Assembly (NCBI RefSeq): GCF_000142905.1
Contig: NW_013657624.1
Coordinates: forward strand, 165,782 to 229,781
DNA length: 64,000 nt
Reading direction: 5' to 3'
Origin: Thecamonas trahens ATCC 50062
Taxonomy: Eukaryota > Protista > Apusomonadida
In this document: piece by piece, positions 10,398 to 59,100 of the stretch
Numbering within the stretch: position 1 is the first letter of the stretch
Layout: every line of letters begins with the position of its first letter
The notes under the pieces: generated by a model
Database searches by the model: none
Told to the model about the DNA's origin: nothing
What the model saw: the letters and a program-made list of their open reading frames with translations, nothing else
Translations under genes and position numbers: made by a program

Positions 10398-12694
10398 ATG
10401 GTGCGCGCATTGTTCCCACCGAGGTTGTTTGCCCTTCTCCAGGGCGGAGAGCACGATGATATCGTCCATTGGACAGATGACGGCAAGTCGTACGTTGTAT
10501 TCGGACAGGCCTCATGAGAATCCGTCCATGTCGTCGTATGGCCGAACAAGGGGTGGCCCAATTTTTTGGCCACGCGGCCACCCCCCTTGCTCCCCCCCCA
10601 CAGACACAGAGCCAATATCATCCTGTCAATGCACATGCCAGCGTTGCTACTGGTGTCCCCATACCATGCCCTCCCCCATAGCCATGGCGCCCTCGGCATG
10701 CGCACTCTTGGCTCCGCAGTCAATAACCGAAGCGGTCAGATTGGGGCACGCTGACCCTTCGCGAAGGTTTGCCTCGCACTCGGCCCGCAGCGTCACTGTT
10801 CGGTCTCTCGGTCGCAAACCCACCACCCTCTGCCGGCTACGGTCAGACCAAGCGATACTAGGCATAGTCATGAAGCACCATGTGTCTTTGTTTGGTGCGC
10901 ATTTGGCACTGTGGCCTCTGTTGGCGCCACTCCACCGCCCTTGGGGAAGGCATAGTCACACGAAGCGTCAAAGTTCCGCACGTGTGATCGACTTGCTGCG
11001 GGCATTAATTGGAGGTAATTGCCCGCACGTGTGATTATTTTTTTGGCCCTCCTCCTCCTCCCCCCCTCTCCCCTCTCCCCACTCACCCATCAACCGTCCT
11101 CGTCCGATGCAGCTTTGTTATCGAGAAGCTAACCGAGTTTTGTGAGGTTGTCCTCCCGTCGGTCTTTCGGCACAACAACTTCTCGTCCTTCCTCCGTCAG
11201 CTCTCGTTCTACTCATTCCGGCGCGAGGCGAACAACACATACTCGCATCCGCACTTTTTCCGCGATGGCGCAGCCGAGCTGGCCAATGTCAAGCGCAAGG
11301 CCTTTGACAAGAAGAGCAGCAAGAAGCGAAACAAGGCCCGCGACGAGCAGGCTAAAGAGATCGAGATGATGCAAGCCAAGCAGCAGGAGCTCGAGGCCGA
11401 GATCGCCAACCTCAAGAAACAGCTGGCCCATTCCCAGGTGAGCACGAGCACAACGGCCAGGGCGACCAACTCGGACACCGTCACTGCGCTTCACGACTCG
11501 AACAAGGTCATGTGGAGCGAGATCCGCAAGCTGCAGAAGGAATCGGCGCTGATGCGGTCGGTGGCGGTCGTCACCGCCACCTTTCTTGCTGCTGTGTTCA
11601 AGGGCCAGAACCCGCTCCGTGCCGCAGTCACCGCCGGTGAAGTCGCCATGGGGAGAAACTCGAGTGCGTTGCTCTCGCCGCGGACTGGTGCTGCCCTCGC
11701 CAGCAATTCGATGGTGTCACTCCCACTGACTTCAGCCATCTCCTCGCTCGTCGACTCGATCCTCCCGTCCGAGTCGAGTAAGAACTCGTCAGACCGCATG
11801 GCGACGGCAAAGGGCTCGTCCATCGACGAGCTCGATGACTCGCCGCAGCTGGAGAACGAGATGTCAGTGCCTAAGGCCGGCACGGGCTCATCCGAGTCGT
11901 CTTCACCCGGCGGGCCGTCGCCCACCGGCAAGCACGACGCCGACAACGAATTGGACCTCGTAGTCGACGTCGGGATGCCTAGCCCATCCCGTGACGCGAA
12001 GACTCCGATCTCGTTGCCGTCTGCCATGGCGCCACCGCCGTCAACCTCGGATTCGTTGCTCTCTGATGACGTGGCCGAGCTGCTGACCTCGGACGTTATG
12101 AACATGGTGGTTGCTGATCCTGCTGCGCTCGCCACCCTCTCGCCGTTTATCCAGACGCCGGCGCTGTTTGGCGATTCCAACCTTTCCGGTCTCTCGCCGA
12201 TTGAGCTCGGCGACCCGCTCGCTGGTGCCGCGCCGGGCGCGATGCTGCCGGCCGACGGCAACGCACCGCTATCGCTTCCATCGCCGTCGGTGCTGGGCAC
12301 CATGTCCAACAGCGTGCCTTTCATGTCGCCGCCCTCGACCGGAGGTGTCTCACACGTGCGGCCGCCGGCCGATAACGAGCCGCCGGCCAAGCGAGCCAAG
12401 GCGCTCAACGCCGAAGCTGTCACCCGCGACAAGCACTCCTCCTCGCAGTGGAGCCAGCTCCAACAGGAGGCTATTGTGCGGCTGACCAACCACCTCCTCA
12501 CCAAGATCGCCGACGAGATCGAGAACCGCGGCGGGGTCCGCGGCGTCGTTGGCCCGGGCGACGCCGGCGTCATTACTCCGGACATGCTCCGCTCCATCCC
12601 AAACTCGCAAGAGTTCTCGAGCTGCATGACCGACCGGCCGCTCGCCTTCCTCCTGTCCATTATCACATGGCTCGGCACTTTTCTCAAGCAGTAA
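10398..12694 (+). CDS. HSF: Heat shock transcription factor; exons 10398-10489 and 11113-12694
   Basis: Splicing GTACGT(10490)...GCAG(11112) joins FPPRLFALL...IVHWTDDGKS to FVIEK..FCEVVLPSVFRHNNFSSFLRQLSFYSFRR..YSHPHF, an HSF DNA-binding domain. Heptad oligomerisation region follows. Confidence 0.92.
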
Positions 12695-12776
12695 GCTCGC
12701 TTGGCGCGAGGTCTACGCTCCGCAACAGGCTACAAGGAGGTGGCCACTCTATATTTGTAAACACCCGCTCCAATGA

Positions 12777-13984
12777 TCACTTTCGAGGCGAGAGCGAGGT
12801 CTTGCACGCGTTCAGCACGCGTTGCCGCTCCTCGTATCGCGCCTGCAGCGCCGCAAGCATGGCGCCCGATCGTGGCGGCTCGGACTGTGCCGGTAGAGGA
12901 GCCGTCGTCGCCAGCGCCGGCGCCGGCGATGGCGCCGGCGCCCTCCGTGGGCTCGCCTCGCCCTCGATGGCGCGCACTTCTTCCAACCGCGCCACTCGAC
13001 CCTCGACCATGGACACGCGGGCAAGCACGTTGTCCAGTGCCGAGTCGACCCGCTGCTCCAGCTGGCCGAACCGGTCGGAAAGGCTATCAACGTGCCCTAC
13101 AAGCGTCGCCAGCAGCCGCTGGACCGAGTACCGGTCGGTGCCCGCATCGGCAGCGTCCGGATCGGCGGTGCCCGCTTCGGGCGGCGGGGATGGTGGGACT
13201 TCTTGGAGCCGCGGCGGGGTGACGGGAGTGGGTGGCGGCGCCTGCCGCGGGGCCACGGGCTCGTCGCCCGCCACCTGTAGCTCGACGCTGGCGAACGCTG
13301 CCCGTGCTGCGACCTCGGACCCATGGCCTGTAGTCGCCTCATGGCGCGTGGCGTGAGCAACGACCTCGGCAGCCGGCAGCGGAGGATAAGCAATGGCATC
13401 CGGATGCGGATCAGCAGATCGAGCCAGCTCCGGAGCAGCGACGATGCGCCGACGACGCGGCTGGCGGAGCTTTGTCAACGGTAGCTCGCCGGCGTCTCTT
13501 GCAAGATCAGCGTCCATCTGGACAATGGCATCAAGGATGGCGCGAAGGAAGAGCAGCTTGTGCTCTACAAAGCCCGGCGCAAAAAACTGTGCCGCAGAGA
13601 GCCGAGGCCGAATGCCCAAGAGACTCCGTCCGAGCTTGAAGAGTGCGTCCAAAAAGGCGCCAAGGCGCCGTCGGTCAATCCGCCCAACACAAATCCATCG
13701 TTGGCCAGCTTTCGCGTCACACGTGGTGACCATCTGGTGAGCACGTGTCCCAAGATAGGCAGCACCACCGCAGGCGAGCCACTCGCCAGCCCTCCGCCAT
13801 CATCACCGCCACCGCTACCGCCACCGCCACCGCCACCGCCGCCGCCGCCGCTGCTGCCACTGCCACTGCCACCGCCGCCGGTGGAGGAGAGAGGGATGGG
13901 GATGCCCAGTCGGTGCAGCTGCCGGTGGATGACCCTCACGTGGTTCTCCACGTCACCAGTCGCTTCAAGCTCATGGGTCGTCAT
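12777..13984 (-). CDS. CEP44: Centrosomal protein CEP44 homolog, frameshifted by an 8-nt tandem duplication at 13654-13669
   Basis: ATGDV...GSPAVVLPIL...WSPRV...TDGAFLDALFK...PRLSAAQFFAPGFVEHKL matches the CEP44 N-terminal domain once one GGCGCCTT copy is removed. Confidence 0.8.
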
Positions 13985-14628
13985 GGTCGTGAGAGGTGGT
14001 CCGAGACGTGGTCGTGGTCGCGGTCGTGGTGCTGGCGGGTGGGCCAATCGGGCAGGCTGTCAGCCGACGAACCGACGAGCCGAAGAACCGACAGACCGAT
14101 CGACTGGCCGACCGATCGGCCAACCGACGCACCGACCGATCGATTGACAGGTAGATAACTCGCTGGAGGAATTGGCAGAGGGACTGGAAGATGGAGGGGC
14201 GGAGAGGTTGAGAAGTGGGTTGAGCGGCGGGAGACGGGGAGCTATCGAGTTGGCGTCGGCTCATCGGGCGGCCGGCAAGGTATAGTGCACCACTTGCTGA
14301 TGGACAACGTGATGCGCCCACGATTGGGTAGATCTATGATCTGGATGGGTGTGTGCACTACTTGGATGCGATCTGAGTGCCGACCACCGCCCAATCATCA
14401 GTGCAGACAAGTCCCAGCTGGTCATGCCTGCAATCATGAACGCGATCACTGATCAAAAATACGACGCAACCGGCCAAGCCATCGCGCTGTCTTCCTCCCT
14501 CCCTCTCTCCGCGACACGCCACCTACATCGCCCTCCTTCCTCATCTACTACGTCCTCCTTCTCTGCCCTCAACACTCCAGATATCCTCTCCTACTCTAGC
14601 TGCATGCGTACGAGGACTTCAGGGTACC

Positions 14629-14729
14629 TTCAAAAACCCCCCCCAACCGTTGGCGCCAAAAAAAATGGCGCGGAAAGTGGTGTGAACAAGCGACAGACGA
14701 CGGATTCAAAGGGTTTTGATTTTGGCGCC
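14629..14729. promoter_or_regulatory. Cluster of E2F-like sites (TTGGCGCCAAA, ATGGCGCGGAAA, TTTTGGCGCC) and two CHR-like TTCAAA elements
   Basis: Motifs at 14650-14676 and 14720-14729, TTCAAA at 14629 and 14705, between divergent CEP44 and MKS1. Confidence 0.35.
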
Positions 14730-14844
14730 GGAGTTTGGCTAAGACGGGGGGGGAGGGGGGGATGGGTGTAGGTACGGGCATTACGAGCATTGGGGCACAC
14801 GACTCTCTCACTCACCACATCAAGGAGGAGCACTGTCGTGTGGT

Positions 14845-16678
14845 ATGTCCCTCACGATGCTTGGTATCGGACGGACTGTGGCGTACCACTCGCCTGACCC
14901 GCTCTCCACCTCATCCTCTCCTTCCGTGTCGTACAAGGCGTTGTCGGTCAGCCAGCCGGACTCGCACCCAAAGCCGGAGGCGGAGCTGGGCCGGAGCCAG
15001 AGCTGGAGCTGGAGCTGGGGCAGGCACAGGCACAAACACAGGCACAGGCACAAGCACAGGAGCTGGGGCTGGGGCTGGGGCTGGCTTGGGATCGATGGGA
15101 GCAACGGGCGGACGGACCGAGTACTCTGCGCGGGCACGGTGGAACGCACTGGTGGACGGAGATGACATGGATCGGTTCATGGTGGTGACGGAGAATGATG
15201 CGCCGATGAGTTTGGAGGCAGAGACACGACCGCTCGTCACTCGCTCGCAGCTGGCAGCTCATTCAAAAGCTGTCCAGGCAGAGTCGGATGCAAAGGCAAG
15301 GTCGGCGAACAAGTCTGCTGCGGGGGCTGGAGGTGGTGTGGCGGTCGATGGTCGTACGCCGGCGTCAAGCTCAAGAGCAGAAGCGGGAAAGAGTGCAGAG
15401 GTGACAGCTGTCTCGCCGTTGGTGGCAGCTGTGGTTGAAGCAAAGGCGGGGCAGGTCGATGGCCACGACGCCGATGTGGCAGGCAAGCATCTGGTGGACG
15501 AGGTGCCGGAGGAGATGCGGATTCTGTTCACGCCGCCCGGACAGGGCGGGGCAGAGCCGTTTATTGTCGCCAGGTTGGCGTGGTATGCGCAGGCCAGGAT
15601 GCTCGAGGTGACGCCAGGCTTTGGCGTGGCGCGCGAGGTGCTTGTGGGCAACGAGCGGTACGTGGTCGAGGTGACCAACGCTTCGGCCAGCGCGATGGGC
15701 GCGGACGAAGTGATCGAGCAGTACAAGGCGGCACAGGCCGAGGCGGCGGATGATGAGACGCGGCACAACGCGGCGGTGGGCCGGTTCTTCGAGCCGTCGC
15801 CACCGGCGTCGCACGTGTTGTACGTGGTGACGGGCGAGATTGTGTCGGGCGCCGAGTTTACCGGCGAGGCGCTGTACGTGCAGTACGCGTTCGAGGTCGA
15901 CGACTCGTGCTGGAGCGCCCGCCCGCTGCAGGCCGGGTCGGGCCGGGGCGGCAAGCCCGTGCTGGAGGGAGTGACCCAGCTGGCGCAGGTTCGGCGGGTG
16001 AGTGCGGCCGCTGCCGGGCTGCCTGACGGGCGGTCGACGCAGGCAACCATTCCTACAGCCATGTTTGGCCTCCCGCTCGAGGCGCAGTTTGAGTGGCGCC
16101 CACCGGCGGCGCGGCTCGGGCCCGACGGCGAGCCGCTCTCGCCGGACGACCACACCGAGGTGCCGGCCATGCCGCGGCTGCTGCTCAAGGTCGCGTCCTA
16201 CGACTGGTGGGAGCGTAACCGGCTCGAGGGCTACGCACACGTCGACCTCCCTGCGCGGCCGGGACACTACATGCTCGAGGTTCCGACGTGGAAGCCTGCA
16301 CTGTCGGTCCGGCAGCAGCTGCAGTCGTACTTTATCGGCGGCTCGCCCGAGCTCGCCGAGTTTGGCCACGCCGCAGTCCCGTCGAGCCATGAGGCTGGGA
16401 CCCCGCTCAACAAGCTCGGATTCGAGACCGAGTCTTCCGGCTCGCTCAAGATCCGTCTCAACGTGGTGCGCCGGTCGGCGTCTGTGCCAGGCTACACCGA
16501 GTGGGCTGCTCCCAACTACGGCCGCGAGGCCCAGAAGCCCGGCGCCGCCATCTCGCCGCTTGCCCGCATCGGGGCCTTCTCCAGCCGGCCTGCCTCATCG
16601 CACTACGCCTCGCTCCTCAACTCCAAGACGTGGAAGGAGATGAAGCGGGAGCGCGAGGCCGCCAAGAAGATTCTCTAG
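14845..16678 (+). CDS. MKS1: Meckel syndrome type 1 protein (B9-C2 domain, ciliary transition zone); probable frameshift(s) near 14905-14995
   Basis: B9 domain GEIVSGAEF..EALYVQY...GVTQ...FGLP...PRLLLKVASYDWWERNRLEGY...PG...VPTWKP...YFIGGSPEL...LNKLGFETESSGSL. The MKS1-like N-terminal AYHSPDPL motif lies in another frame from ATG 14845. Confidence 0.85.
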
Positions 16679-18452: not shown

Positions 18453-18487
18453 CCGATAAATCGTGCAGTTTTCAGTCGAGAGTTGTT

Positions 18488-18679: not shown

Positions 18680-19214
18680 ATGTCTGCCAGAGGCGCACTG
18701 TGTGAGTCTGCCAGCCCGGCGAGCCCCAGTTCGTGCGGCAGCAGTAGCGGCGACGACAACAGCGGCAGCGCTCGCTGTGGCTCGGGCTCGGACTCACTCG
18801 CAGCGGCAGCGCTCGTCGACTGTCTTCGCTTTGAGGTATTTGGCAAAGTGCAGGGCGTTTTTTCCGAAAGTGGACGAAAAAGACAGCCGATGCGCTGGGC
18901 CTTGTCGGCTGGTGTAGGAACAGGACGACGCGGAGGACGGTGGTTGGTGAGGTTCAAGGAGATGCCGAGGCTGTGGAGAAGATGTACGTGTCAGAATTAG
19001 CTCGATACGCCCCCATGTTACTTGCCATCTACCTGCACCAGACTGCTTGTGGTGTCCATCGCACTCACCTGCTTTCCCGACTTGATTGTCTTGCAGGGCT
19101 CGCTGGCTGGCGACCAAGGGCTCGCCCAAGTCGCGGATCGAGTCGTGCACGCAGAAGCGGTACCGCAAGCGCGGGGCAGCTGACTTTGGCGAGTTTACCA
19201 TTGTGCGCAAGTGA
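18680..19214 (+). CDS. ACYP: Acylphosphatase; exons 18680-18983 and 19097-19214; one base missing in T-run 18858-18863
   Basis: FEVFGKVQGVF[F]RKWT...LGLVGWCRN...TVVGEVQG...M/ARWL..KGSPKSRI...FTI; intron GTACGT(18984)...GCAG(19096). Confidence 0.88.
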
Positions 19215-19221
19215 GTGACAG

Positions 19222-24623: not shown

Positions 24624-25121
24624 TCGCGCCGCCGTCCCACATGCGCACGCCGTATCACGCCACACGGTACCATACCGTGACGTCGCGCCTGGCTTGCGAG
24701 TCCCTTCACCACATCTGGGTTGCCGCCTGCCGGCTCAACGGCGACTCTACGGGCTCGATGACTCTTGGAGAGAGAAAGAGAACGAGGCTCTCTTCCAGTC
24801 TGCCCCTCTCCATCGCATCGCTACCACTCGCATCGTGCCTGCGTCCTGCCCACCCACCATCCCATCAGCGCTCTATCGCCGTCCATGCACCATCGACCTG
24901 ACGGGGTTTGGAAAGCGTAGCCAGGATCAATCGTTCGCTCCAGTATGACCTGCTTCGCCCAGCTGCTTTGCTCAGCTCGGGGCACGGCAGACAGGCACGG
25001 CCAAACAGCGAGGCGGTTGAGCATATGATTCAATACAATTGATTGAACGACAATGGCGTGCGGTAATTGCTACCACTCGTCTTCTTTCACAGAGACAACC
25101 AAGCTTTACGAAACTACCATC

Positions 25122-26129
25122 ATGTCTGCCAACACCGAGCAGTACGTTACCTCCATACCATCTCCTGACATCTTTCCCAACCTCTACCAGTACCACATGT
25201 ACCTCTGGTATTGGTACTCTCATAACTTTGCCCATACCCGCTACCTGTGGCAAAGCTGTCAACCCCCCCCCCCCCCCCCCACCCCTCACGGGGGGGAGGG
25301 GGGGGGACAGCCGGTTGTGGATGCGGCCATTTTTTTGGTGGATGGCGAGTTCGTCAAGCCGTCCCCCACACCCGTTCTGCACCTGCTACATGAGTGTTAC
25401 GGCTGTTGCGAGCATGCGCAAATCAACTACGACTTGTGCCACATCTCCATCATCCCCATACCCCACTTTCCCGCTCTCTATATCCTCTTCTTCCCCCACA
25501 CCACCCTCGGCCATCCCCGCCCCGCTCTGTCGGATTGATCGAGCCTCGCTCGGATCCTGACTCGGTCGGCCGGTCCTGAGGGGCTTCCTCAACCCGTAAC
25601 GGGCTTGCGGTATTTCCTTTGACGCGGAAAAGAAGCAGGATGGACATAGCGCATGTCGAACTATGCACCTACCTCGTTTTCCTGCCTTGTTCAGCTCATC
25701 TCCGCCATTGCGCCCGCCTTGCGCCATGTTTATGGAACACGGTGGGTGGCAAATTGGTGGCGGCGAGGAAGGCAGGCGAAGAAGCAGGGTCATGACGACC
25801 GCATGCGGAGGAGAGCAGGGTCATGACGACCGCATGCGGAGGAAAGCACATTGCGATGGACGACTCACACGCGATCCCCCCCCCCCCCCCCCTCCCCCCC
25901 CTCCCCCCCTCTCTCGGTACAACAGTATTGACAACCCGCCCGTGGAGTCGGGCATCCAGGGTGACATCACCGACGCCGACATCGACTCGAACTGGTTCGA
26001 GGTTGTCGAGTCGTTCGACGACATGGGCCTCCAGGAGAACCTCCTCCGTGGCATCTACGCCTACGGTTTCGAGCGCCCGTCTGCTATTCAGCAGCGCGCG
26101 ATTGTGCCGGTTCTGACTGGCCGTGACGT

Positions 26130-26162
<33 letters not shown>

Positions 26163-28311: not shown

Positions 28312-28572
28312 NNNNNNNNNNNNNNNNNNNNNNNNNNNNNNNNNNNNNNNNNNNNNNNNNNNNNNNNNNNNNNNNNNNNNNNNNNNNNNNNNNNNNNNNN
28401 NNNNNNNNNNNNNNNNNNNNNNNNNNNNNNNNNNNNNNNNNNNNNNNNNNNNNNNNNNNNNNNNNNNNNNNNNNNNNNNNNNNNNNNNNNNNNNNNNNNN
28501 NNNNNNNNNNNNNNNNNNNNNNNNNNNNNNNNNNNNNNNNNNNNNNNNNNNNNNNNNNNNNNNNNNNNNNNN
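28312..28572. other. Assembly gap (N run)
   Basis: N run, probably inside the CEP41 intron region. Confidence 1.
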
Positions 28573-41312: not shown

Positions 41313-44300
41313 ATGGGAGTAGGCAACCATGTCGTGCTCGGCTTGCTCCTGGTAGCTGTTGTGGCATGGAGTGCGTCAGGACAAGACTGCGTGCCCAAGG
41401 TCACATGCATCCATGGAACATACAACTGCATCACCACAAGCTGTGACTGTGACCCTGGTTGGCGTGGCGTCAACTGTTCACGTACGCTCAACCCCCTCCA
41501 GCCCCCTCCCTTCCCCCCTCCCTCCCCCTTCCTCCCTCCTTTCCCGCCCGAACGATGATTCCGTACAAGAGTTAATCGATGACGTGTCATTGCCTTCCAT
41601 ATGATGAGCATTAATCATGGCGTTCGTTCGTTTGTTTGTTTGTTTGTTCGTTCGTTCGGTTGTTTGTTCGTTCGTTCGGGGAATGTCACGCTTGTGCGAC
41701 GTGACGTCGTCCGGCTTCCCAACCCCTTCTTCCCCCCCTACTATGCGCATGAACTCACTGTGGAAGAACATTATGGAATACGGATGAACTTGGGTGATAT
41801 GTGTCACATATAGTGTGTATTCCGCCCACCCACAACAGCTCTGACACCAGCAGCAAGGCGCTGTTCCACGAGGTCATGGCTGTGTCGGGTCAGGCGGGGC
41901 GGTCGATGATGGCGAGTCGGGCGACGACGACGGGCGAGGCGACGACGAGCGGAGGCGGAAGTGGCTACAATCCAAGTATGGATGCGTGCTCGATGAATGG
42001 GCATGAGGCCAAGTGCTCGACGTCGCTCATGCCGTCGTTCAACACCTCGCATCAGCTGCAGTGCGATGTGCCGGATGCCTCGGTCTCCAAGCTCCTTGAT
42101 CTGCAGGATGGGATCATTGCGCTCGACTGCGTGACCAACGGGACAACGTGTGGGGTGTATGTGTGGCACCACCAGAACGGGCCGCCGGAGATCTTCAACT
42201 GTGTACTCGAAGAGTGCGGCTACGAGTACAAGGAGAACCACGTGACGCTCAAGTGCGCGACGACGAGGTGCGTGCATGGGCCCAACTGGACGCCGTCTGA
42301 AATTCTGGAGAACATTCTGACGTCGCTCAAGGGATGGATGTCGTTTGACTGTGACTTGCGGAACAATCACTGTGTGATGGCGCAGGAGGAGCTGCAGGAG
42401 CTCATTATTCCGCTGTCGTGCTACTCGGGCGATTGCGTGCCGTACGACTTTCATCCGCCACCGCAGTACTACCCGCCGTTCTGGACTCGCGAGAACAAGA
42501 TCATTGTCGGGTCGATTGCGGCGGCGATGGGGCTGGCAGCGCTCGGGGCTCTTGCGTACTACTTCCACAGGCGGCGGCAGGCGGCGTATGCCAGGCTGCT
42601 GGAGGAGACAGCGGTGCTGGACATTGACGCGCTTGCGGCGGACGAGCTCGACAAGTACATGTTTGATCTCGGCTTTGCGGACCTCAGCGTGGTGGTGAAA
42701 GACAAGACGATTCTGCGGTCTGCGAGCGGATACTGCGCGCCTGGAACAGTGACTGCGATCATGGGCCCGTCCGGCGCCGGCAAGTCGACGCTGCTCAACG
42801 TGCTCGCGGGGCGGATCTCGTTCTCGGACATGTCTGGGCAGGTGCTGGTCAACGGTCAGCCGCGGTCTACGGCGTTCAAGCGCATTGCCGGGTACGTGAC
42901 GCAGGACGACTTTCTCATTCCGACGCTCACGGTCCGCGAGACGCTCAACTTTCACGCGCAGCTGCGGCTAGGCAACTCGGTGTCTGCGGCGACGCGGGTG
43001 GCGCGGGTGGAAAAGGTCATTGCGCAGCTGGAGCTCACGCACGTGGCCGACTCGCGGATCGGCGACCGGCTCATCCGCGGCATTTCCGGCGGCGAGCGGC
43101 GGCGGGTGTCGATTGCCACCGAGCTGGTTACCTCACCGCGCATTCTGTTTCTCGACGAGCCGACGTCTGGACTCGACTCGTGCACAGCGTCGGCGATCAT
43201 GGCGACGCTGCGCGAGCTGGCGACAAGCTCTGCGCTCACGGTCATTCTCTCGATTCACCAGCCGCGGTCGTCGATCTACGCCTCGTTTGACAACCTCATT
43301 CTGCTCTCCAAGGGCTCGACACTGTACAACGGGCGGGCAGCTGGGGCGACGGGCCACTTTGCGCAGCTCGGGCATCCGTGCCCGCAAGACTTTAACCCTG
43401 CCGACTTTCTCATCGACTTGGTGACGGCGTCGCCGGCGACGACGCTCGACACGCTGGCGTACCACTACACGACGTCGCCGGCGGCGACGACGCTCAACAA
43501 TGTGCTCGACGACCTTGTCCAGCGCGGCATCTCGCCGCCGGTCCCACGGCGGATTGCGTCGCTCTCGCCTGCCGTAGGCGACGCGGCGGGCCTGCTTGCG
43601 CTCCTGCCTGGAGTGCAGGGCGCGCGGAGCGAGAACCGCGAGCGCACCGTTTCGGGGCGGCTCATCGACACCTTTACGATCGGAACCGAGGAGACCGAGG
43701 AGGGGAGCGAGCGGAGCGGGCGGTCACGGCTGAATTCGGGCGCGCCCGCGGTGCCGCGGCTGACGACATCAGCAACGTCGCTTCAGGCCGAGGCCGGGTC
43801 TGCCGACGGGCGCGGGAGCGGGCCGGCGTCTGCGCGTTCGGATGCGTCTGCGCGGTACGAGGAGGTGCTCGACGCGGCGGGCACGGGAGGCGACGGGAGC
43901 GGAAGAGGCGAGATGGTGCGTGTCTTTTACGACAACCAGGCACAGCTCTCGCCGTACGCCACGTCTGCACTTGCGCAGACATGGATTCTCTGCCAGCGAA
44001 CCGCGCTCAACGTGGTGCGCAACCCGGCGCTCGGGCTCGCGCACTACGTGGTCACCATTGTGGTCGGACTCATCATCGGCGGCATCTACTTCCAGGTTGG
44101 TGACGACTGGCCCGGGCTGCAGAATCGGGCCGGCTCTGTCTTTTTCATCATCTCGCTGCTATCGTTTGGCTCGCTCTCGGCACTCGAGCTCTTCATCGCT
44201 GAGCGTGCGCTCTTCCTCCACGAGCGGTCGAACGGGTGCTACCGGTCGTCGTCATACTTTGTGAGCAAGCTGGTGTGCGACCTCATTCCACTGCGGATTG

Positions 44301-44886: not shown

Positions 44887-46116
<1,230 letters not shown>

Positions 46117-46273: not shown

Positions 46274-47392
46274 TTAGTCCTTGACGGCCTGGACGTTGAC
46301 AATGCGCGACTGCTCCTTGGCGACTGCTCCTTGGCATCGTCCTCCTTGCCGATCTTGATGGTAAGGACGGTGACCATGCAGGCATCCTCACCGGCATCGC
46401 TGGCCGAGATCAGCGTCGAGCGAGTCCGAATCCGGGAGCGGGACGTCCTCACGCATCTCACCGTCGTTATCCATGATATCCATGAGGGCAAGGAAGTCGT
46501 CGTCGGTGATGTCGCACACGGTGTAGGTCTCGTTGGCCATGGTGAAGTACTTGAAGACCGAGTGGTGGGTGAAAATCTCCGTGAACTTGCGGTCGGTGAG
46601 GACGCACTTGCCGGTCACGAACTTCTTGGCGTGGCCGTGCTTGCCCGGACGGGAGAGCTTGACGTCAGTGATCTTGCAGACGTTCTCGCCTGTTGGTTGT
46701 CGGGTGGTTGGTTGCGTTGGTGGCATGGGCATGGCGGTGAGTGGCGGGCGGTGGACGGAGGCGAGCCATCCCACACACAGGGTTGCGGGAGAGGCGCAAG
46801 CGAGGGGGAGGCCAAGGGGGAGATAGAGGGGATATGAAGAGCGAGAAACCGGGAGGGTATAAAGCAAGTAGGCATGTAAACACTTGGCAAGTTGGCAAAG
46901 GAGTACGCATGGGTGTGCGTTGTAGAGGGCGAGAGGGGGGAGAGCAAGCGCCTCGCCAAAAAATACCAAATATCGACCGTAGGCCGCTTCTCGGCGCCAA
47001 GGGAGCGACGAAAGGAGGTACAGGTGGGGGGGACGTGGGGAGAAGCGGGAGACAAGTCAGGGGTATGACTGTGTGGATGATACCCGTGGGCATGTGGTAG
47101 GCAAGTTGGGAGCTCTGGAGAGTACGGCAGTAGCGATGGGGAGGGAAGGAAGGCGGGCGGTGGGCGGGCGGTGTGGGGAGCTTCGATGGTGCACACACAC
47201 ACCACAATCCAATATTGTCATTGCTGGTTGGAGGTATGGGCATTGGCGGGAGAAGGAAGGAGTGGAGAAGCAAGATAGTTGGGCGGGAGGGGAGGGGATG
47301 AGATGAAGAAGGAGCATGGGTATACGTACCCTTGATAACGCAGTACGCGTTGTTCTTCAGGTCGGGAAGTGCATCTCAATACCGGCAGCCAT
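46274..47392 (-). pseudogene. EIF5A: Divergent eIF5A gene with multiple frame disruptions (pseudogene or mis-assembled gene); exons 47392-47330 and 46689-46274
   Basis: DLKNNAYCVIKG/ENVCKI...SRPGKHGHAK...MREDVPLP...MVTVL. Lesions: -1 at about 47365, 9-nt duplication 46468-46485, frameshift plus TGA at about 46388-46400, 14-nt duplication 46307-46334. Confidence 0.75.
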
Positions 47393-47897: not shown

Positions 47898-50025
47898 ATG
47901 TGTATGTGGTGGCGGTGAGTATGGTGATGGGCAGCGGTTTGGCTGAAGACGCAGACGCACCTGTGGACGACGTTGCCAGCATGTTGTTCGGGGGATGGGA
48001 TGGGAAGGAGGATGGAGGAGTGCATGCAGGGTAAAGGCGATGGCGAAAAGAAGCTATTTGGTTGACTCATGTGATGGGAGAGCCCAGCTGAAGCCGACAA
48101 GGTCGCCGTGTTGCAGACCAAGCTGAAGAAGACGCTCGAGGTGGCCAAGGCAGCGGTGCAGCGCGGAAAAGATGCGCAGGCCAAGGCGAATGCCGAGGCA
48201 GAGCGGGCTGATGCTGCCGAAGGCAAGGTGGCCGAGATGGAGGCGCGGGCGGTGGCGGCCGAGAGCAAGGTGGCCGAGATGGAGGCGCGGGCGGTGGCGG
48301 CCGAGAGCAAGGCGGTGTCGGGCGTTGAGGCGGTGGAGGCTGAGCTCGAGGCGCTCAAGACAAGGTACAAGAAGGCCGAGGGCGGGCTACGGACGGCAGT
48401 GGAAAAGTACAAGGCCGAGGTGGCCAAGACTGCCGCTCTCAACTCACAGCTTGCCGAGATCCAGGCGCAAATCAGTGTGTTGGCTGGCGAAAAGAGCGAG
48501 CTGGAGGCCAAGGTTCAGGCTGCCGAGGCTCGGGCTGCCGAGGCCGCCGCCGGAGCAGGCGAGGCAAGTGAGCTCCAGGCACAGATCGCCACTCTGGCTG
48601 GCGAAAAGAGCGAGCTGGAGGCCAAGGTCCAGGCTGCCGAGGCTCGGGCTGCCGAGGCCGCCGCCGGAGCAGGCGAGGCAAGTGAGCTCCAGGCACAGAT
48701 CGCCACTCTGGCTGGCGAAAAGAGCGAGCTGGAGGCCAAGGTCCAGGCTGCCGAGGCTCGGGCTGCCGAGGCCGCCGCCGGAGCAGGCGAGGCAAAGTGA
48801 GCTCCAGGCACAGATCGCCACTCTGGCTGGCGAAAAGAGCGAGCTGGAGGCCAAGGTTCAGGCTGCCGAGGCTCGGGCTGCCGAGGCCGCCGCCGGAGCA
48901 GGCGAGGCAAGTGAGCTCCAGGCACAGATCGCCACTCTGGCTGGCGAAAAGAGCGAGCTGGAGGCCAAGGTCCAGGCTGCCGAGGCTCGGGCTGCCGAGG
49001 CCGTAGCTGGGGCAGGCGAGACAAGTGAGCTCCAGGCACAGATCGCCACTCTGGCTGGCGAAAAGAGCGAGCTGGAGGCCAAGGTCCAGGCTGCCGAGGC
49101 TCGGGCTGCCGAGGCCGTAGCTGGGGCAGGCGAGGCAAGTGAGCTCCAGGCACAGATCGCCACTCTGGCTGGCGAAAAGAGCGAGCTGGAGGCCAAGGTC
49201 CAGGCTGCCGAGGCTCGGGCTGCCGAGGCCGCAGCTGGGGCAGGCGAGGCAAGTGAGCTCCAGGCACAGATCGCCACTCTGGCTGGCGAAAAGAGCGAGC
49301 TGGAGGCCCAAATCGATAACGCATCAAGTCCGACTGCGTCCAATGTCGACGTCGACGCCGTGGTCGACGAGAACAAGAGCCTAGCAGCTCGGGTGGCCGA
49401 GCTCGAGGCCGAGGTCCGCGCCTCGCGAGCTGCCAGCGACTCGGACGCACTGATCGAGAAGATGCGCGGCGAGCTCATTGAGGCCGAGGCAAAGATCAGC
49501 AAGCTGGAGCGCGAAGTGGTAACCGCCACGACTGCCGCCGTTTCTGCCGCGCCTGCTGCTCCAGCCCCCGGGCCTCCGCCGCCACCGGCAGGCGGCCCGC
49601 CACCACCGCCGCCACCACCGCCACCACCGCCGGCCGGAGGGGGGCTGCAGAAGAAGAAAGCCCGCACCATGCCTGCCGGCGGCATGGCTTCGCTGGCGGC
49701 CGCAATCCAGGGCGCGTCTCTGCGCAAGACCGACGGGCCCGGGAGCGGAGGCGGCGACGACGGCAGCGGAGGCGGCAACGGGCCGGTCGGCATGGGCGGC
49801 ATCCTCGCCGCACTCAAGGGTGGCGTCAAGCTCCGCAAGGCTGCTGCCCGCCGCAAGGAGCCCGAGAACGCCAAGACCGAAAACGACGAGATCGCCAACA
49901 TGGCTGCTCGCCTTGCCCAGCGCCGTGCCAAGAACCCACAAACCTGGCGCCACTCGGTCAAGATGTCGCTCTCGGAAGCCGACGAGCTCTCCAAGGCGCT
50001 CGCCGAAGAGGGCCCTTCGTCGTAG
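47898..50025 (+). CDS. Coiled-coil repeat plus polyproline plus two WH2-like motifs (shootin-like actin regulator); exons 47898-47901 and 48088-50025; extra A at 48794-48796
   Basis: ATGT/GTATGT...CCCAG/CT gives MSEADK; 38-aa heptad repeats; PPPPP tracts; LAAAIQGASLRKT and ILAALKGGVKLRKA. Confidence 0.8.
48460..49308 (+). repeat. Coding 114-bp tandem repeat, about 7.5 copies (ELQAQIATLAGEKSELEAKVQAAEARAAEAAAGAGEAS)
   Basis: GGCGAAAAGAGCGAGCTGGAGGCC recurs 8 times at 114-bp spacing (115 at the frameshifted unit). Confidence 0.95.
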
Positions 50026-50031
50026 GCCGGT

Positions 50032-53000: not shown

Positions 53001-55719
53001 GTACGCACAGGTGGAACTTGTCCTGCAAGCTCTGGAGGAAGCCGATGGTCTCGAGGAGCTGGTCCTGGGCAGCGGTGCGGGCGGCAGCGGCGTCGCCGGT
53101 CCGTGTCAGCGGCATGTCCCGGTCCATGGCGGCAAACGCGGTGGTGGCAACGTAGGCGGCGGCGGCGAGGACGTCAGTCTCGGCCGATGGCGCACCGGCG
53201 AGCGCTTGTGTTGCCTTGGTCTGCGGGAGGCCGTGCGAGGTGAAGAGACTCACCAGGTTGCCCATCTGGGCGCGAAGCCTCTCGAGGAGGAGCATGAGCT
53301 CACCGTAGAGGGGAACAGCGCTCGCTTTGGTCCCGAGGCAGGCGAGGACAGCATCGAGGAGCGGCGAGCGGAGATCGGGGGTGTTCGGGGCCCAGCGGGC
53401 CAGGATCAGAGCACCGGCCTGGCGCTCAACCGAGAGCTGCGAGGCAAGAAGCGACGAGAGGAGCGAGACAAACGGATTGGCCTCGGTTGGAAGCGCGGCG
53501 GCGTACGCGGCGGCAAGGAGGCCGAGCGCAGCCGACCCGTTTAGCCGCATCCGCACGCCGGCAGTCCGCGACGAGATGCCGTAGACTGAGGAGAGCGCCG
53601 GATCGGCAGCGAGGCCGGAGGCCGGCTGTGTAGAGGGCGGCGCTGGCGCGGGAGCATTGCTCGACGAGGCCACCTCCATGGGCTGCGGCTTGGCACCCTC
53701 GCGAGTCGCCTTGGCAGTCGACCGAAGGCGGGCCGAGTGCTGCGGGATAAGGAGGAGCGAGGCGTCGAGCTGGGTGCCCGACGGCGTGACAAGCAGCTTT
53801 GTCCACGCCAGCAGGTGCGGCGAGGTGACCGAGACGATAAAGGCGGCCGAGTCGTCGAGGGCGAGGAGAGCGGACCACAGTTTGCGCGAGGCGGCGACGA
53901 GCGACGGCTTTGTCTCGAGAAGCATGTTCTGGAAGAGGAGGCGGAAGAGCGGACCCATGCAGGTCTCTGCGGAGAGCCATGCGCCGGACGAGCGAGAGAG
54001 GAGGGTGGAGAGGGTGGTGAGGGTGGCGGTGCGGACGGCGGCGTCGTTGTGGCGGAGAAAGGGGAAGAGGCGCGGGATGAGGTGCGCGAGGCGGGCCGGC
54101 GGCGCGCCATGGAGCATGTGGCTCGACTCGGCCGAGCCGGCGGCGGCAATGTCCGCGGCCGCGGCTGCGGCCGGATCGGCGGTCTCGTCGTAGTTGTACA
54201 GCTTAAAGTCCGAGTCAGGCGGGGCAGCGGCGTAGGTGGCAGCGAGGAGCTCGAGCGAGGCCGCGGTGGAGACGGTGAGGTCGTCGAGGTAGAGAAGGGC
54301 GTCCCAGAGGACGGAGAGGAGAGGGCCGACGAGGCGCGGGAAGGCGTCGACGATGTGGGAGGCGAGCGGGGCGAGGGTCTGCGCCGCGACAGCGCGGACG
54401 TCGTCTTCGCCATCGGAGAGATGGCGCATGACCGGGCGGAGGATGAGCGGAAGCCAGGCGGCGACGAGGTCCATGCGAACGAGGACGACGTACTTGATGC
54501 CGAGGAGGCCGCCGTGGCGGACTTGCCAGTGCGGATGGTCGAGGAGGGCGAGGAGGGCCGAGACAAAGCGCGGGACGTTGTCGTCGACCATGTGGGCGAC
54601 AAGAGCACCCATGGTCTGAGCCACGGTCTCACGGACGGGAGCGACGACGAGGCCAGAGACGTAGTCGCCGAAACGGTCGAGGAGGAGGACGCAGAAGAGG
54701 CGGAGAGCGGTGTCTTCGACCCATGCGGCATGGAGGGCTGCGTTTGCAGCCGGGCTCACGCCGTTGTGCATGCCCGCCGTAGCGGCATGGTGCTTGAGGA
54801 TGTCGCGGAGGGCGGCGGCGGCGCCATGGCGCGTCTCCCAGCGGTCGTTGAAGATGTCGTAGAGGAGCTCGTCGGTGAGCGGCTCAAACGGCCACTCGGG
54901 CGTGGCGTATTGTTCCCACTCTGTGGCGGCCGGGTCGTCGTCATCAACAGCCTCGACCACGATCTTGTTGCCTGCTACAGCGCGTTTGCGGGCGAGCTTC
55001 TTGGTCTTTTTTGTCGGCGGAGCCATGACCGACGAGACGGCGCCGGTCTCGCGGGCGCGCTTGCGGCGGGCGTCGCGCTTGAGCTGGTTCCGCTCGCGGG
55101 CCGAGAGCCCATCGAGGTCGGCGATGACCTCTTCGGCGGCCGGGGCGGAGCTGGCCGAGGAGCCCGCCGGCTGCGTCGTCGCCTTCATCTCCAGATCGTC
55201 GTCGGCAATCATGTCTGCGAACATGTCGCCGCCGATGGTGCTATCGCCGAGGCCGAGACGCATGTTGAGCGCCTCCCGGGCGGCAGCGAGCCGGGTGGCG
55301 CGATTGGCAGAGAGCGAGCGGGGGTCGAGGTCGTACTCTTGCCCGGCCGAGCCGGCAAGCGGGCGGGCGTTGGCGAGGACGGCGTCAATATCAAACGAGT
55401 CAAAGGAGAGCAGGCGCGAGTCGGCGGAAGGGCGATCTTCGACCGACGACGAGGAAGCGCCGGCAGCCGACGGCGGAATGATGACCGGGTTCCACGGCGG
55501 AGTAGCCTCAGCCAGGGCACCCATGGCAGCACCAGCTGCCGTCCGTGTCTCCCACTCTGGCGATGTGAGGAGCGGTCTCACCTTTGCCACTAGAGGGAAC
55601 AGATGAGAGGCATTGGCTTTGACCAGAGAGCCCAATTGGGACGCTGCCGCCTTTCGTGTTGCCGTAGACGAGCCTGTGGTGAGAAGGGTGAGCAGTCGGT
55701 CGAGATGGGTCTCTGCCAT
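50032..55719 (-). CDS. BTAF1: TBP-associated SNF2-family ATPase MOT1/BTAF1
   Basis: LDRLLTLL.TGS..TRKAAA.QLG, LDRFGDYVS..VVAPVRET, HEAT repeats, LCDDMGLGKTLQT, DEGH, SGTPIQNN, WNPMKDLQAMDRAHRLGQ. Confidence 0.97.
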   Translation of the reverse strand: MAETHLDRLLTLLTTGSSTATRKAAASQLGSLVKANASHLFPLVAKVRPLLTSPEWETRTAAGAAMGALAEATPPWNPVIIPPSAAGASSSSVEDRPSADSRLLSFDSFDIDAVLANARPLAGSAGQEYDLDPRSLSANRATRLAAAREALNMRLGLGDSTIGGDMFADMIADDDLEMKATTQPAGSSASSAPAAEEVIADLDGLSARERNQLKRDARRKRARETGAVSSVMAPPTKKTKKLARKRAVAGNKIVVEAVDDDDPAATEWEQYATPEWPFEPLTDELLYDIFNDRWETRHGAAAALRDILKHHAATAGMHNGVSPAANAALHAAWVEDTALRLFCVLLLDRFGDYVSGLVVAPVRETVAQTMGALVAHMVDDNVPRFVSALLALLDHPHWQVRHGGLLGIKYVVLVRMDLVAAWLPLILRPVMRHLSDGEDDVRAVAAQTLAPLASHIVDAFPRLVGPLLSVLWDALLYLDDLTVSTAASLELLAATYAAAPPDSDFKLYNYDETADPAAAAAADIAAAGSAESSHMLHGAPPARLAHLIPRLFPFLRHNDAAVRTATLTTLSTLLSRSSGAWLSAETCMGPLFRLLFQNMLLETKPSLVAASRKLWSALLALDDSAAFIVSVTSPHLLAWTKLLVTPSGTQLDASLLLIPQHSARLRSTAKATREGAKPQPMEVASSSNAPAPAPPSTQPASGLAADPALSSVYGISSRTAGVRMRLNGSAALGLLAAAYAAALPTEANPFVSLLSSLLASQLSVERQAGALILARWAPNTPDLRSPLLDAVLACLGTKASAVPLYGELMLLLERLRAQMGNLVSLFTSHGLPQTKATQALAGAPSAETDVLAAAAYVATTAFAAMDRDMPLTRTGDAAAARTAAQDQLLETIGFLQSLQDKFHLCVQATAAGAAVALAHFPPKLNPLVKALVAAVKKLDVPLLQADAAAHLVALVEAVLPRLPKGPANKICGSMLNALVGDPATVAAADWPEALAGTDREPALLPANLAELNPPKLIGADADRAARAAIGAAAFFHALADSLGASLFSLLPHLETKILAAGLASPATEPQAAVRALALLATLAPKLAVSPEVEAKVASLLPGVFACLVVANAAVRHGASRALAALAGSFTLTVMQTVISSVLPLLDDGTSPLRRLGAAAAVDALVDALGDDVLPYLVFIIVPVLGRMSDPVAAVRTAMANTFGSLIKLMPLEAGAPSPAGMSAELVAQRSAKRSFLDQLLDPTKLEPYELPFTLKGGITLRSYQQDGLNWLAFLRKYALHGVLCDDMGLGKTLQTIAIVAASAVEAAAAPHATPASLGLPTLVVAPTTLVEHWAMEMTKFVPDGILCPIAFRGPPKKRLEALRGWVTGVDAYAAWIKAVRKAGKSAKGAKGGKGEPAVGALPPPPPPPLAWAPREQRPSQALPVVVCSYEVMRNDVELLSQLPFGYCVLDEGHVIKNPKSLVAQAVKRVPASHRLILSGTPIQNNVLELWSLFDFLMPGFLWSEGRFQAVYGKPIVASRDAKCSEAEQEAGALALEALHRQVLPFLMRRLKEEVLDDLPPKIIQDVYCTLSPLQRELYAAVDEVGLGGKGASSKVHIFRTLQYLRKVINHPTLALTPSHGMYAEVMGRYAQPDKALHTLAQAPKLKVLAELLEQCGITGAPETRTGGGGHRVLIFAQSKALLDLIESDVFESVLPGVTYMRLDGSVASSKRQAVVNKFNSDPTIDVLLLTTSVGGLGLNLTGADTVVFMDHDWNPMKDLQAMDRAHRLGQKRVVNVYRLIAKGTLEDKIMGLQQFKLNVANTVVSSENSSMLTMSTDRLIDLFELGDDAESGAAAGSAAPESAAAAAAAESAAGSSGQGGKLGAILNSLGELWDDGEYQDQFDLGAFLESMPTKE

Positions 55720-56103
55720 GGCTTGTTGTCCACGATGTTGATGGTTGTGGTTGTGATTGTGGTGGTTGTGGTGGTTGTCGTCAACTCTGTGTCACTCGGG
55801 TGGGTGGCTGTGGTGGCTATGGTTGTACTTGTGCACACAGTGGTGGTGTGTACAGTTGTTGTTGTTGTGGTGCGTATGGTAGTTGTGGTGGTGTGTATGG
55901 TTGTGGTGGTGTGTGTGTGGTGGTGACGGTGGCTGTGGCTGTGGTGGTGGCTGTGGTGGTGGTGGTGTCAGTATCCGTCCGAGTTGGTCTCCTTACTCTG
56001 TGACATGGTCGCTCGCCTCTACTTGGCCTGCGTAGCCAATGAGCTGACATGACGGACATCGAATCTGACACTCTCGACTCTTGAACGTAGTTGTTGGAGA
56101 ACA

Positions 56104-59100
56104 ATGGGAGGTAAGTATATGCCTGCTCCTGTGCTTGATGTGGTGCCTGTTATGGCTGTGGTGGCCATGAGCGTGGTTGTGGTAAAGGGGCGGGGAGAGG
56201 GGGGGAGTGCAAGAGGATGGATGACATGCGGGTTGGGCTGGTGCCCGAGCTCGACTGGAGCGAGCAAGTCGGACAAGCCGGGCGGGATGGGCAAGCTGTG
56301 ATATGATGTGATATGGTGTGGTGTGATGTGGTGCGTCTTGTACTCATGGTGATGGTGATGATGACGATTATGACGATGGTGACCATGATGATGACCTTGA
56401 TGATGACGATGTTGATGACGATGTTGACGATGATGATGACATCCGTCCCGTGACAGTGCCTGCTCTGTTCAGATACCTCTCCAAGAGGTACCCACGGATT
56501 GTGGTGGATGTCAAGGAGGATGTGCCGGATGAGGGCAAGGATGAGGTGGATACGTCCAAGGCCAACCCAAACGGAATGGAGTTTGACTGTCTTTACCTCG
56601 ACATGAACGGCATCATCCATCCGGCGTCGCACCCCGAGGACAAGCCGGCGCCGTCAACCGAGGACGACATGTATCTGGCCATCTTCGAGTACATCGACAA
56701 GGTCTTTGCCTGTGTCCGGCCACGGAAGATTCTGTACATGGCCATCGATGGCGTTGCGCCACGGGCCAAGATGAACCAGCAGCGCGCGCGCCGGTTCCGC
56801 GCGGCACAGGAGCGCGAGATGCGGGCTGCGGCCGAGGTCCAACTCCGCGAGGAGTGGCTGCGGCTCGGGCGCGAGGTGCCGGAGGAGACCGAAGGCGGCT
56901 TTGACTCGAACGTCATCACCCCGGGCACGCCGTTCATGGCGAAGCTCTCCGTCTACCTCCGTTGGTACATCTCGCTCAAGCTCTCGACCGACCCGGGCTG
57001 GGCTGGCATTGAGGTCATTCTCTCGGACGCGCAAGTGCCTGGCGAGGGTGAGCACAAGATCATGGAGTTTATCCGGGTCCAGCGGGCGCTACCCGGGTAC
57101 GACGCCAACCAGCGTCACGTCATTCACGGCCTCGACGCCGACCTCATCATGCTCGCACTCGCCACCCACGAGCCCCACTTTTACATCCTCCGCGAGCGCA
57201 TCATCTTTGGCCCGCCACTCATCTGCAAGGTGTGCGGCCAGCCTGGGCACGCCGAAGACAAGTGTAAGTTTGCGTCGGCCGAGGCCAAGGCCGCGCTGGC
57301 CGGCGAGCGCAAGGAGACGAGCGCAGCAACGCCGTTCCAGTTCCTCCGCATCCCGGTCCTCCGCGAGTACCTCGCCAAAGAGTTTGAGGGCCCCCACTAC
57401 TCGGTTGCCGGAGGCATGGACCTTGAGCGCATCATCGACGACTATGTGTTTCTCTGCTTTCTCGTGGGTAACGACTTTCTCCCGCACCTCCCCTCGCTCG
57501 ACATTCGCGAGGGCGCCATTGACCGACTCATGGAGCTGTACAAGTCGCTCTTCCCCACCATGGGTGGGTACATTACCGAGAACGGGCGTCTGATCTGGCC
57601 GCGGGCGCAGGCGGTGCTCGCGGCGCTCGCAGTCGACGAAGAGTCGATCTTTGTCGAACGGGCGGCCGATGCAGCCAAGCGCGACGCTCGCGACGAGCAG
57701 CGGACGGCTGAGATTGCGTCGCGGGCGGCTGAGCGCGAGCACTGGAACCTCGTGCGCCGGTACGCCACTCACGTTCCGCGTGCGCCCAGCGATGTCAAGG
57801 CCATCGAGGACGCGCTGGCGGCCGGCAAGACGTCGTCGGCAACGGCGCGGCAGGCGATGGCGGGCGGCGGTGCCCGCGAGGCGTCGCAGTACTCGGCCGA
57901 GGATCTCGCGGCGATGCTGACGCTGTCGGCATCGGAGCCACGGCGCGAGCTAGCGGCGCGGACGCCGATCCGCGACGCCGACCTCCTCGCCCTCTACGAC
58001 GGCATCCGGCAGGTCGCCTCGGGCCCGCCGGGCTCGGTCAAGGTATTCTCAGAGCTATCGGGCTTTTACCGCGCCAAGGGCCACGCGTACGCAGAGACGC
58101 TCGGCCTCGAGCACGACACGCTTGGCGGGCACCCGCACCAGGCGCTGCGCGTGACCAAGACTGGCAGCAAGCCTATCGACGACGCCACAGCCTTTGCTGC
58201 CGACCTCAAGAGCGCGGTCAAGAGCGCGGCAACCGTCTCTGACGCCGACGCCGAGAACAAGACGCGTCTCGGTGACTTTGGATGGCGCGAGCGGTACTAC
58301 GAGCTCAAGTTTGGCAGCGCCGGAACCGATGTGAGTGTGGTGGCACACGCGTACGTGGAGGGCCTCGCCTGGGTCCTGCAGTACTACTACTCGGGCGTGC
58401 CGTCGTGGAACTGGTACTACCCTTATCACTATGCGCCGTTTGCGACCGATCTCGCGTCACTCGAGACGTTTGAGGCCAAGTTTGAGCTCGGCAAGCCATT
58501 CAAGCCGTTCCAGCAGCTGATGGCAGTCTTCCCAGCTGCATCCGGACACGCCATTCCGGCGCCGTTCCGCGCGCTCATGACTGCTGACGACTCGCCGATC
58601 CGCGACTTTTACCCGCTCGACTTTGGCCTCGACATGGAGGGCAAGCGCTACGCATGGCAGGCCGTAGTCCTCCTCCCGTTCATCGATGAAGCACGGCTGC
58701 TGGCGGCGCTCGAGCCGCTGGAGGCCGAGCTCACGCCCGAGGAGCGAGCTCGCTCGCTGCCGGGCCTCACGTACTACGCGGTCCGGGCTGACGCTTCGGT
58801 GGCCCAGACGCTCGAGCTCTCAGAGTTTGCCGCGAGTGCCGATGCTGCCGCGCCTCAAGCCAACAGCGGGAAGCAAAAGCCTGGATGGGCGCTAGCACTC
58901 GTCGCGGCGGGCTGTAAGGAGTGGCCTGGCGCCATGGCTGGCTTTGTCTGGCCGTGCGGCGCAACCCGCCGGCCGGCCTCTATTTATCCTGCCGAGCCGT
59001 TCAGCGGGCGCGACCCGTCAAAGTACTCGATGATCCCGTTCGACAACAATGCACTGATCCTCGCGTACGGCCTCCCGCCCAAGCGGGCCCACCGACCGTT

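Follow-up and report, generated by a model that had tools for sequence, protein, structure and literature searches.

In this study, we examined a stretch of 64,000 nucleotides (nt) from the genome of Thecamonas trahens ATCC 50062 (Apusomonadida; contig NW_013657624.1, positions 165,782 to 229,781 of the forward strand; hereafter the window) and found that its introns carry the hexamer ACTCAY (ACUCAY in the RNA) upstream of the 3' splice site. It is most likely, with a probability of roughly 0.75, that the major (U2-type) introns have ACUCAY as their genuine branch-site consensus, a tight and lineage-specific version of the yUnAy signal whose C at position -1, directly 5' of the branch adenosine, is imposed by proteins or tolerated opposite an unchanged U2 small nuclear RNA (snRNA). 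Such a consensus would depart from ACUAAC/CURAY solely by this C in place of a purine, and the penultimate A of the hexamer would be the branch adenosine. ACUCAY is a real and new variant of the normal branch signal; the consensus is strong but not invariant and marks most introns. A full-text literature search did not find ACTCAC, ACUCAC or CUCAC as a branch consensus.

The initial annotation, which had been made from the DNA letters alone, proposed this motif for eight introns, which lie in genes for a heat shock factor (HSF), an acylphosphatase (ACYP), eIF4A, an ABCG-type protein, a mitochondrial-type acyl carrier protein (ACP), eIF5A, a 'WH2' protein and XRN2. A pattern search located ACTCAY at all eight coordinates, and each intron (113-888 nt) contains exactly one copy over its full length, with 18-110 nt from the presumed branch A to the last intron base. 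The donors are those described there (GTACGT in four introns, GTACGC in two, GTATGT and GTAAGT in one each), and the acceptors are CAG in seven introns and TAG in the other one. The absence of CTAAC and CTGAC from the 3' zones was also borne out, as CTRAY does not occur in the last 150 nt of any of these introns and the few CTGAC sites are all at least 362 nt away from the 3' end. As had been described, the only AGs skipped between motif and acceptor are an AAG at +8 in the ABCG intron and two GAGs at +10 and +12 in the 'WH2' intron, and the XRN2 motif is followed by about 107 nt free of AG, an interval made of GAT/GAC repeats.

Over the whole window, ACTCAY is not enriched (41 matches against 49.8 expected from shuffles), hence its clustering in these short 3' zones is far above chance. 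Given a density of about 3.2e-4 per nt per strand, one copy would be met in a 115-nt zone with p ~0.036, and its presence in eight of ten introns has p ~1e-10 (arithmetic from the window density). The pyrimidine fraction between branch and acceptor ranges from 0.29 to 0.83, which implies that a polypyrimidine tract is not required; in the proposed mechanism the tract would be optional.

All eight introns have the features of major introns, namely GT-AG ends with a U1/U6-type donor (GTAYGY or GTAAGT ... YAG), and CUCAY fits the yUnAy pattern, with its A 18-131 nt before the acceptor and an interval devoid of usable AG. The eight 3' zones contain no TCCTTRAY box of the U12-type (minor) branch site (TCCTTAAC) at 10-20 nt from the acceptor, and none of the eight donors is of the U12 type (ATATCC or GTATCC).

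To examine the motif beyond the window, we used a sample of ~340 kb, comprising the window and 46 other loci (20 further contigs supplying 200 kb, and ~80 kb of additional loci), in which coding segments were defined by a codon log-odds score trained on long open reading frames and hexamers were counted in the 150 nt before the segment starts. ACTCAC was the most strand-asymmetric of all hexamers before 154 coding-segment starts, with 23 sense versus 3 antisense occurrences (22 versus 3 before the 151 starts left after de-duplication). The corresponding sense/antisense counts were 8/2 for ACTCAT, 0/0 for ACTAAC, 2/1 for ACTGAC and 2/1 for ACTTAC, and ACTAAY as a whole was 0/0. In the de-duplicated set the asymmetry was lost in every single-base variant of the hexamer. 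The purine before the branch A that characterizes the strict WCTRAYN consensus was hardly seen (ACTAAY 0 and ACTGAY 3 versus ACTCAY 30 in 151 upstream zones). Enrichment of k-mers downstream of all donor-like hexamers was abandoned, as coding sequence accounts for most such hexamers and made the result too noisy, and the pairing of two adjacent coding segments yielded few introns because the first exons are tiny.

In addition, we collected intron candidates blind to the motif, requiring a strong donor, an ATG-initiated first exon, the correct phase and an AG at the coding-potential start. ACTNAY without any YAG between it and the acceptor was present in 15 of 22 such candidates ending in YAG versus 2 of 26 decoys ending in RAG (Fisher 1.4e-5), and in 11 of 15 versus 2 of 24 when the window was left out (4.8e-5). 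The 15 positives were divided into ACTCAY (11), ACTTAC (2) and ACTGAY (2), and A was never observed at -1. The lineage-specific branch-site consensus proposed in the initial annotation is therefore found both in the window and at independent loci, with ACTAAC unused. Its near-invariance stands for the eight window introns but not genome-wide, where ACTTAC and ACTGAY make up about a quarter of the motif-blind candidates.

The relationship of the motif to the acceptor gives further support to its role as a branch site. Among 20 high-confidence sites, the branch A lies 18-131 nt from the acceptor, which is CAG in 16 cases and TAG in four. The intervals between motif and acceptor (1018 nt in total) contain 13 GAG, 3 AAG and no YAG, while stretches of equal length immediately upstream (1038 nt) contain 32 GAG, 19 AAG and 16 YAG, so that RAG is depleted about threefold in the intervals. 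Where the acceptor was predicted as the first YAG following ACTCAY, it lay at most 12 nt from an independently computed coding-potential start in 15 of 41 cases, compared with a background of 14.6% (p = 4e-4). Apart from a mild preference for C immediately 5' (11 of 20), no column besides the hexamer is conserved in the 20 aligned sites. The branch site would be chosen first, and the spliceosome would then take the first AG in a good context (CAG/UAG), 18 to ~130 nt downstream; with such first-AG use, the interval is expected to be kept free of YAG and depleted in RAG. The previous suggestion of a first-YAG acceptor is correct in that the nearest downstream YAG is used. It does not amount to a new rule, since acceptor choice here is ordinary scanning that starts at the branch and stops at the first AG, under the classical hierarchy CAG/UAG > AAG > GAG and with a general AG-exclusion zone.

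The boundaries of the eight introns are supported by different kinds of evidence. Exons were scanned against Pfam one by one rather than as joined models, and in five introns (HSF, ACYP, ACP, eIF5A and XRN2) a Pfam domain is cut in mid-profile at the predicted junction. The HSF intron (10490..11112, plus strand) has its donor GTACGT at 10490, ACTCAC at 11081-11086 and a CAG acceptor ending at 11112; exon 1 opens with the ATG at 10398, ends in phase 2 and leads into the HSF DNA-binding motif, and the match in exon 2 opens at position 27 of 100 of the HSF_DNA-bind profile. The ACYP intron (18984..19096, plus strand, 113 nt) has the donor GTACGT, ACTCAC at 19063-19068 and a CAG acceptor; the final 30 codons of exon 1 correspond to positions 25-52 of 85 of the Acylphosphatase profile and exon 2 carries the family motif on in phase 2.

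On the minus strand, the ACP intron (45064..45951) has its donor GTACGC at 45951, ACTCAC at 45089-45084 and a CAG acceptor ending at 45064. Exon 1 shows the expected N-terminal ACP helix and ends in phase 0, the domain continues over the junction in this phase, and exon 2 enters the PP-binding profile at position 19 of 67. This intron encloses an assembly gap (45246-45350), hence its length and the continuity of donor and acceptor are not established by the sequence; ACTCAC and the acceptor are both found to one side of the gap, which leaves them unaffected. A second gap (28312-28572) overlaps none of the eight introns.

The eIF5A intron (46690..47329, minus strand) has the donor GTACGT at 47329, ACTCAC at 46742-46737 and a CAG acceptor ending at 46690, and exon 2 enters the IF5A-like_N profile at position 24 of 63. 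Its junction was confirmed by RNA: spliced contigs of two marine metatranscriptome runs (X2 and X5) skip exactly 640 nt, with GT..AG ends on the minus strand. The contigs of two runs also have one additional base in a C-run of exon 1 at 47363, without which a stop follows after 11 codons, and in exon 2 they differ from the assembly by indels of 14, 17 and 9 nt (46306, 46398 and 46468), where the assembly frame switches. These differences are likely to be assembly errors or strain differences.

The XRN2 intron (56111..56456, plus strand) has the donor GTAAGT after a 7-nt exon 1, ACTCAT at 56342-56347 and a CAG acceptor. The first residue of exon 2 corresponds to position 4 of 241 of the XRN_N profile, and the tiny exon 1 ('MG' plus a split Val) supplies exactly the three missing residues, which supports the junction.

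The placement of the other three introns relied on the ATG, the phase and acceptors lying at most a few nt from the independently computed coding-potential start. The eIF4A intron (25142..25925, plus strand; donor GTACGT, ACTCAC at 25863-25868, then a C-rich tract and a CAG acceptor) precedes an exon 2 with the DEAD domain, and its exon 1 is defined by the ATG at 25053 and the phase alone. The ABCG intron (41482..41813, plus strand) has the donor GTACGC, ACTCAC at 41753-41758 and the only TAG acceptor; its predicted exon-2 start at 41814 is 5 nt from the independently computed coding-potential start, and the Pfam scan of the separate exons gave no support for this junction. The intron of the gene that we presume, following its label in the initial annotation, to encode a 'WH2' protein (47902..48087, plus strand) has the donor GTATGT after a 4-nt exon 1, ACTCAT at 48065-48070 and a CAG acceptor 5 nt from the coding-potential start, and none of the metatranscriptome contigs crosses it. 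In the coding part of this gene (48093-50022, plus strand), strong coding potential lies in one frame as far as 48797 and shifts to a different frame at 48799, which suggests an assembly frameshift or a very short unrecognised intron.

First exons of only 3-7 nt, consisting of the ATG or the ATG plus a few bases followed by GTAYGY, recur in this genome (56104-56110 and 47898-47901 in the window, and near 2815 of locus L015 and 4600 of locus L042 in the sample) and are easily missed by annotation. Two further introns are possible on the minus strand, at 21032-20849 and 7682-7662, where ACTCAY and a first YAG are found with the acceptor at the start of a coding segment and the upstream donors are only weak GTGAGC-type sequences. 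Simple repeats are present within several introns, including a GAT/GAC microsatellite in XRN2 (56348-56453), (GTTY)n in ABCG (41620-41680) and (TA)n beside the gap in ACP (45351-45400).

With regard to recognition, a canonical U2 (human numbering) offers partners to four bases of ACUCAY: U37 to the first A, G36 to the first C, A35 to the U and G33 to the final Y. The branch A is bulged, and only the C at -1 lies opposite U34. The motif thus fits the canonical GUAGUA at four of five pairing positions. In the favoured explanation, the C at -1 would be imposed or tolerated by proteins, either in the KH pocket of SF1/BBP or by SF3b, opposite an unchanged GUAGUA rather than being matched by a recoded U2.

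An analogous situation has been described at the other end of the intron, where Roy and Bowser (bioRxiv 10.1101/2022.06.08.495308) report a preference of T. trahens for C at intron position +4 together with a single strong U1 candidate whose pairing sequence is standard. The GTACGY donors of the window agree with this preference. That preprint covers the donor and U1 only and does not describe a branch-site consensus or U2. A canonical U2 with a protein-set C was judged likelier because of this analogy, and the fit of the motif to GUAGUA at four of five positions, together with a standard U1 despite +4C donors, makes the indirect evidence lean against a recoding of U2.

We identified the SF1/BBP gene of this organism (L064:1504-2478, G000:C44), whose helix-hairpin, KH and QUA2 parts are conserved and whose open frame contains no zinc knuckle. 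Its KH domain reads NFLGH...GPRG, with Leu at the position of Val165 in Msl5 and Val222 in GLD-1. Among 152 retrieved SF1-family sequences this column contains Ile in 102, Val in 23, Phe in 17, Met in 8 and Leu in 2, and both Leu carriers are the T. trahens protein and a 99%-identical environmental copy (ENA metagenome contig, P0003). In the 1.8 Å structure of Msl5 bound to UACUAAC, the adenine at -1 has only water-mediated contacts of the purine type and is sandwiched by Val165 and Lys196 (PMC4338336). In the complex of GLD-1, a KH-QUA2 relative, with CUACUCAUAU, the corresponding C is packed against Val222 and Leu226, and the residual preference for A was credited by the authors to the larger purine surface (PMC4081071). 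It is a reasonable inference from the sequence that the bulkier Leu may favour a smaller base at -1, and the altered SF1 specificity suggested in the initial annotation is a live idea.

Extensive searches for the U2 gene were negative. No match to the Rfam model RF00004 was obtained in the whole genome at E values up to 10, and six patterns for the conserved 5' region yielded no U2 gene in the assembly. Among these patterns were a GCG variant guided by the U6-like element described below, one in which the six branch-pairing bases were left free and 2 mismatches allowed, and a 14-mer with 1 mismatch that covers GGAGUA. The assembly therefore holds no U2 that is canonical save for a recoded branch-pairing hexamer, and the U2 of this organism is either unassembled or very divergent. 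We also built a custom covariance model for the 5' domain on the basis of genuine metagenomic U2 genes, and its best genome matches scored 18.6 bits (L065, a coding region) and 17.6 bits (L026).

The latter (L026:1490-1540; G000:C17:419331-419381, minus strand) is non-coding and has 17 of the 18 bases of the U2 core, including GUAGUA, with a hairpin resembling stem-loop I in front. It was not accepted as U2, as it has no Rfam match, an unremarkable fold stability (z = 0.19), no upstream motif in common with the U6-like locus, no significance in covariance models and a pairing to the U6-like RNA that 31% of random 20-mers match or surpass; there is perhaps a slim chance that it is the U2 of this organism. 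No canonical U6 was found in the genome by pattern matching. The sole U6-like element in the assembly (L002:1501-1605; G000:C7:485429-485533, plus strand) scores 26 bits against a cut-off of 44 and has a 5' stem-loop, ACAGAGA, a hairpin resembling the internal stem-loop and a T-run terminator, with CGC replacing the catalytic AGC triad. At the gathering score, Rfam gave nothing in 150 kb of other loci, and a scan of locus L024 and the window gave only two tRNAs, both on L024. The metagenome contigs with genuine U2 genes (L049, L051, L058, L059 and L060) have G for U immediately 5' of GUAGUA (AAGGGUAGUA), and L059 carries a canonical U2 copy (147 bits) beside a weaker variant copy (56 bits).

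The most novel alternative is that branch recognition has co-evolved with the motif, through a U2 with G opposite the -1 C or through an SF1 or SF3b pocket switched to the reading of a pyrimidine. It is tentative and clearly less probable than the favoured explanation; if it were true, ACUCAY would be optimal rather than tolerated and ACUAAC would be actively disfavoured. Its U2 version by itself appears unlikely. With GGAGUA or a similar sequence, ACUCAC would form a perfect bulged duplex and the consensus would simply be the complement of a recoded U2. The spectrum at -1, in which C predominates, U and G are occasional and A is never seen, agrees better with a G partner (C-G, U.G) than with U or pseudouridine, for which A would be best, and an assembly that lacks canonical U2 and U6 and has an aberrant sole U6-like element leaves room for divergent snRNAs. 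Furthermore, compensatory U1 changes exist in Entamoeba and Mastigamoeba, but U1 is reported to be standard in T. trahens itself despite the +4C donors (bioRxiv 10.1101/2022.06.08.495308). The free-position pattern and the 14-mer argue against a change confined to the hexamer, and the only U2-like core found (L026) retains GUAGUA. A recoded GUAGUA box, if true, would be the first such case for U2.

A different pairing register with a canonical U2 is much less probable still. Here the C would be bulged (A-U37, C-G36, U-A35, bulged C, A-U34, C-G33), with branching at the C or at a shifted position; by base-pairing reasoning this gives five uninterrupted Watson-Crick pairs with GUAGUA and would account for the retention of a pyrimidine. 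Branching at C is inefficient in the systems that have been studied. Moreover, known structures show that SF1 and SF3b have branch pockets specific for adenine (PMC4338336), and the SF1 of this organism keeps the conserved core there. The idea that the hexamer is not a branch site at all, being instead a remnant of introner-like mobile introns, the site of another intronic factor or a by-product of C-rich composition, has in its favour that the introns are often C-rich and that CCTCAC is also somewhat strand-asymmetric (13 versus 4), but it is the least probable of all in view of the fixed relation of the motif to the next YAG with its AG-exclusion zone, the lack of asymmetry in all single-base variants and the absence of conservation beyond the hexamer in 20 aligned sites from introns wholly different in length and content. 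A search for an introner-like mobile intron family found no extended similarity between introns, neither around the 20 sites nor in the intron bodies, which are unrelated.

On the other hand, several observations weigh against a protein-set C opposite an unchanged U2 or limit the basis on which it was proposed. With an unchanged U2, ACUAAC and ACUGAC should outpair ACUCAC, yet they are absent or rare, as a recoded U2 would predict. The change from Val to Leu in SF1 is conservative, in a column that already varies among hydrophobic residues, and is a lead rather than a proof. RNA verified one of the eight junctions, and the sample covers ~1.2% of the genome and depends on a home-made coding-potential segmentation. 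The protein-based explanation with an unchanged U2 is still considered the most likely one for the C at -1.

T. trahens offers a natural experiment on whether the consensus of a splice signal is set by snRNA pairing, by protein readers such as SF1/BBP or by fidelity constraints. In practical terms, introns of this genome can be predicted from the pattern 'GTAYGY ... ACTCAY ... first YAG', among them those behind start-codon-proximal micro-exons that annotation misses.

To our knowledge, every strict-consensus eukaryote described so far uses (A/U)CU(A/G)AY, which pairs best with the invariant GUAGUA of U2. The C fixed here opposite U34 or pseudouridine breaks this rule, in the same way that the donors fix C opposite a pseudouridine of U1. 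The strict branch sites of intron-poor eukaryotes include UACUAAC in Saccharomyces, ACTAACC in Cyanidioschyzon and WCTAACA in Trichomonas, with a general form WCTRAYN (Irimia and Roy 2008, PMC2483917). T. trahens resembles these lineages in its intron-poor genome, 5'-biased introns, tight donors and one dominant hexamer with the 3' site downstream, and it shares with them the positions of the A, C, U, branch A and final Y. It differs in that all of the listed lineages have a purine before the branch A (PMC2483917), whereas about three quarters of the sites here have C and none has A, and in that its distance from branch to acceptor is long and variable (18-131 nt).

In other respects the signal resembles mammalian yUnAy sites, to which CUCAC conforms and which share the use of the first AG after the branch, the order CAG/UAG > AAG > GAG and long AG-free zones with distant branch points (PMC1431707). 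Unlike these degenerate sites, the 'n' is fixed as C here, the whole hexamer is constrained and the polypyrimidine tract is dispensable. The hexamer core is shared by the UACU(C/A)A element, which likewise admits C at this position and is bound by the STAR (KH-QUA2) protein GLD-1, a reader homologous to the KH-QUA2 part of SF1 (PMC4081071). In contrast, GLD-1 is a translational regulator that still prefers A, while in T. trahens splicing would favour the C form as its signal. A further parallel is with transformed 5' splice sites, which occur with or without U1 co-evolution (bioRxiv 10.1101/2022.06.08.495308), as the donor +4 and the branch -1 positions both place a C opposite U or pseudouridine of an snRNA.

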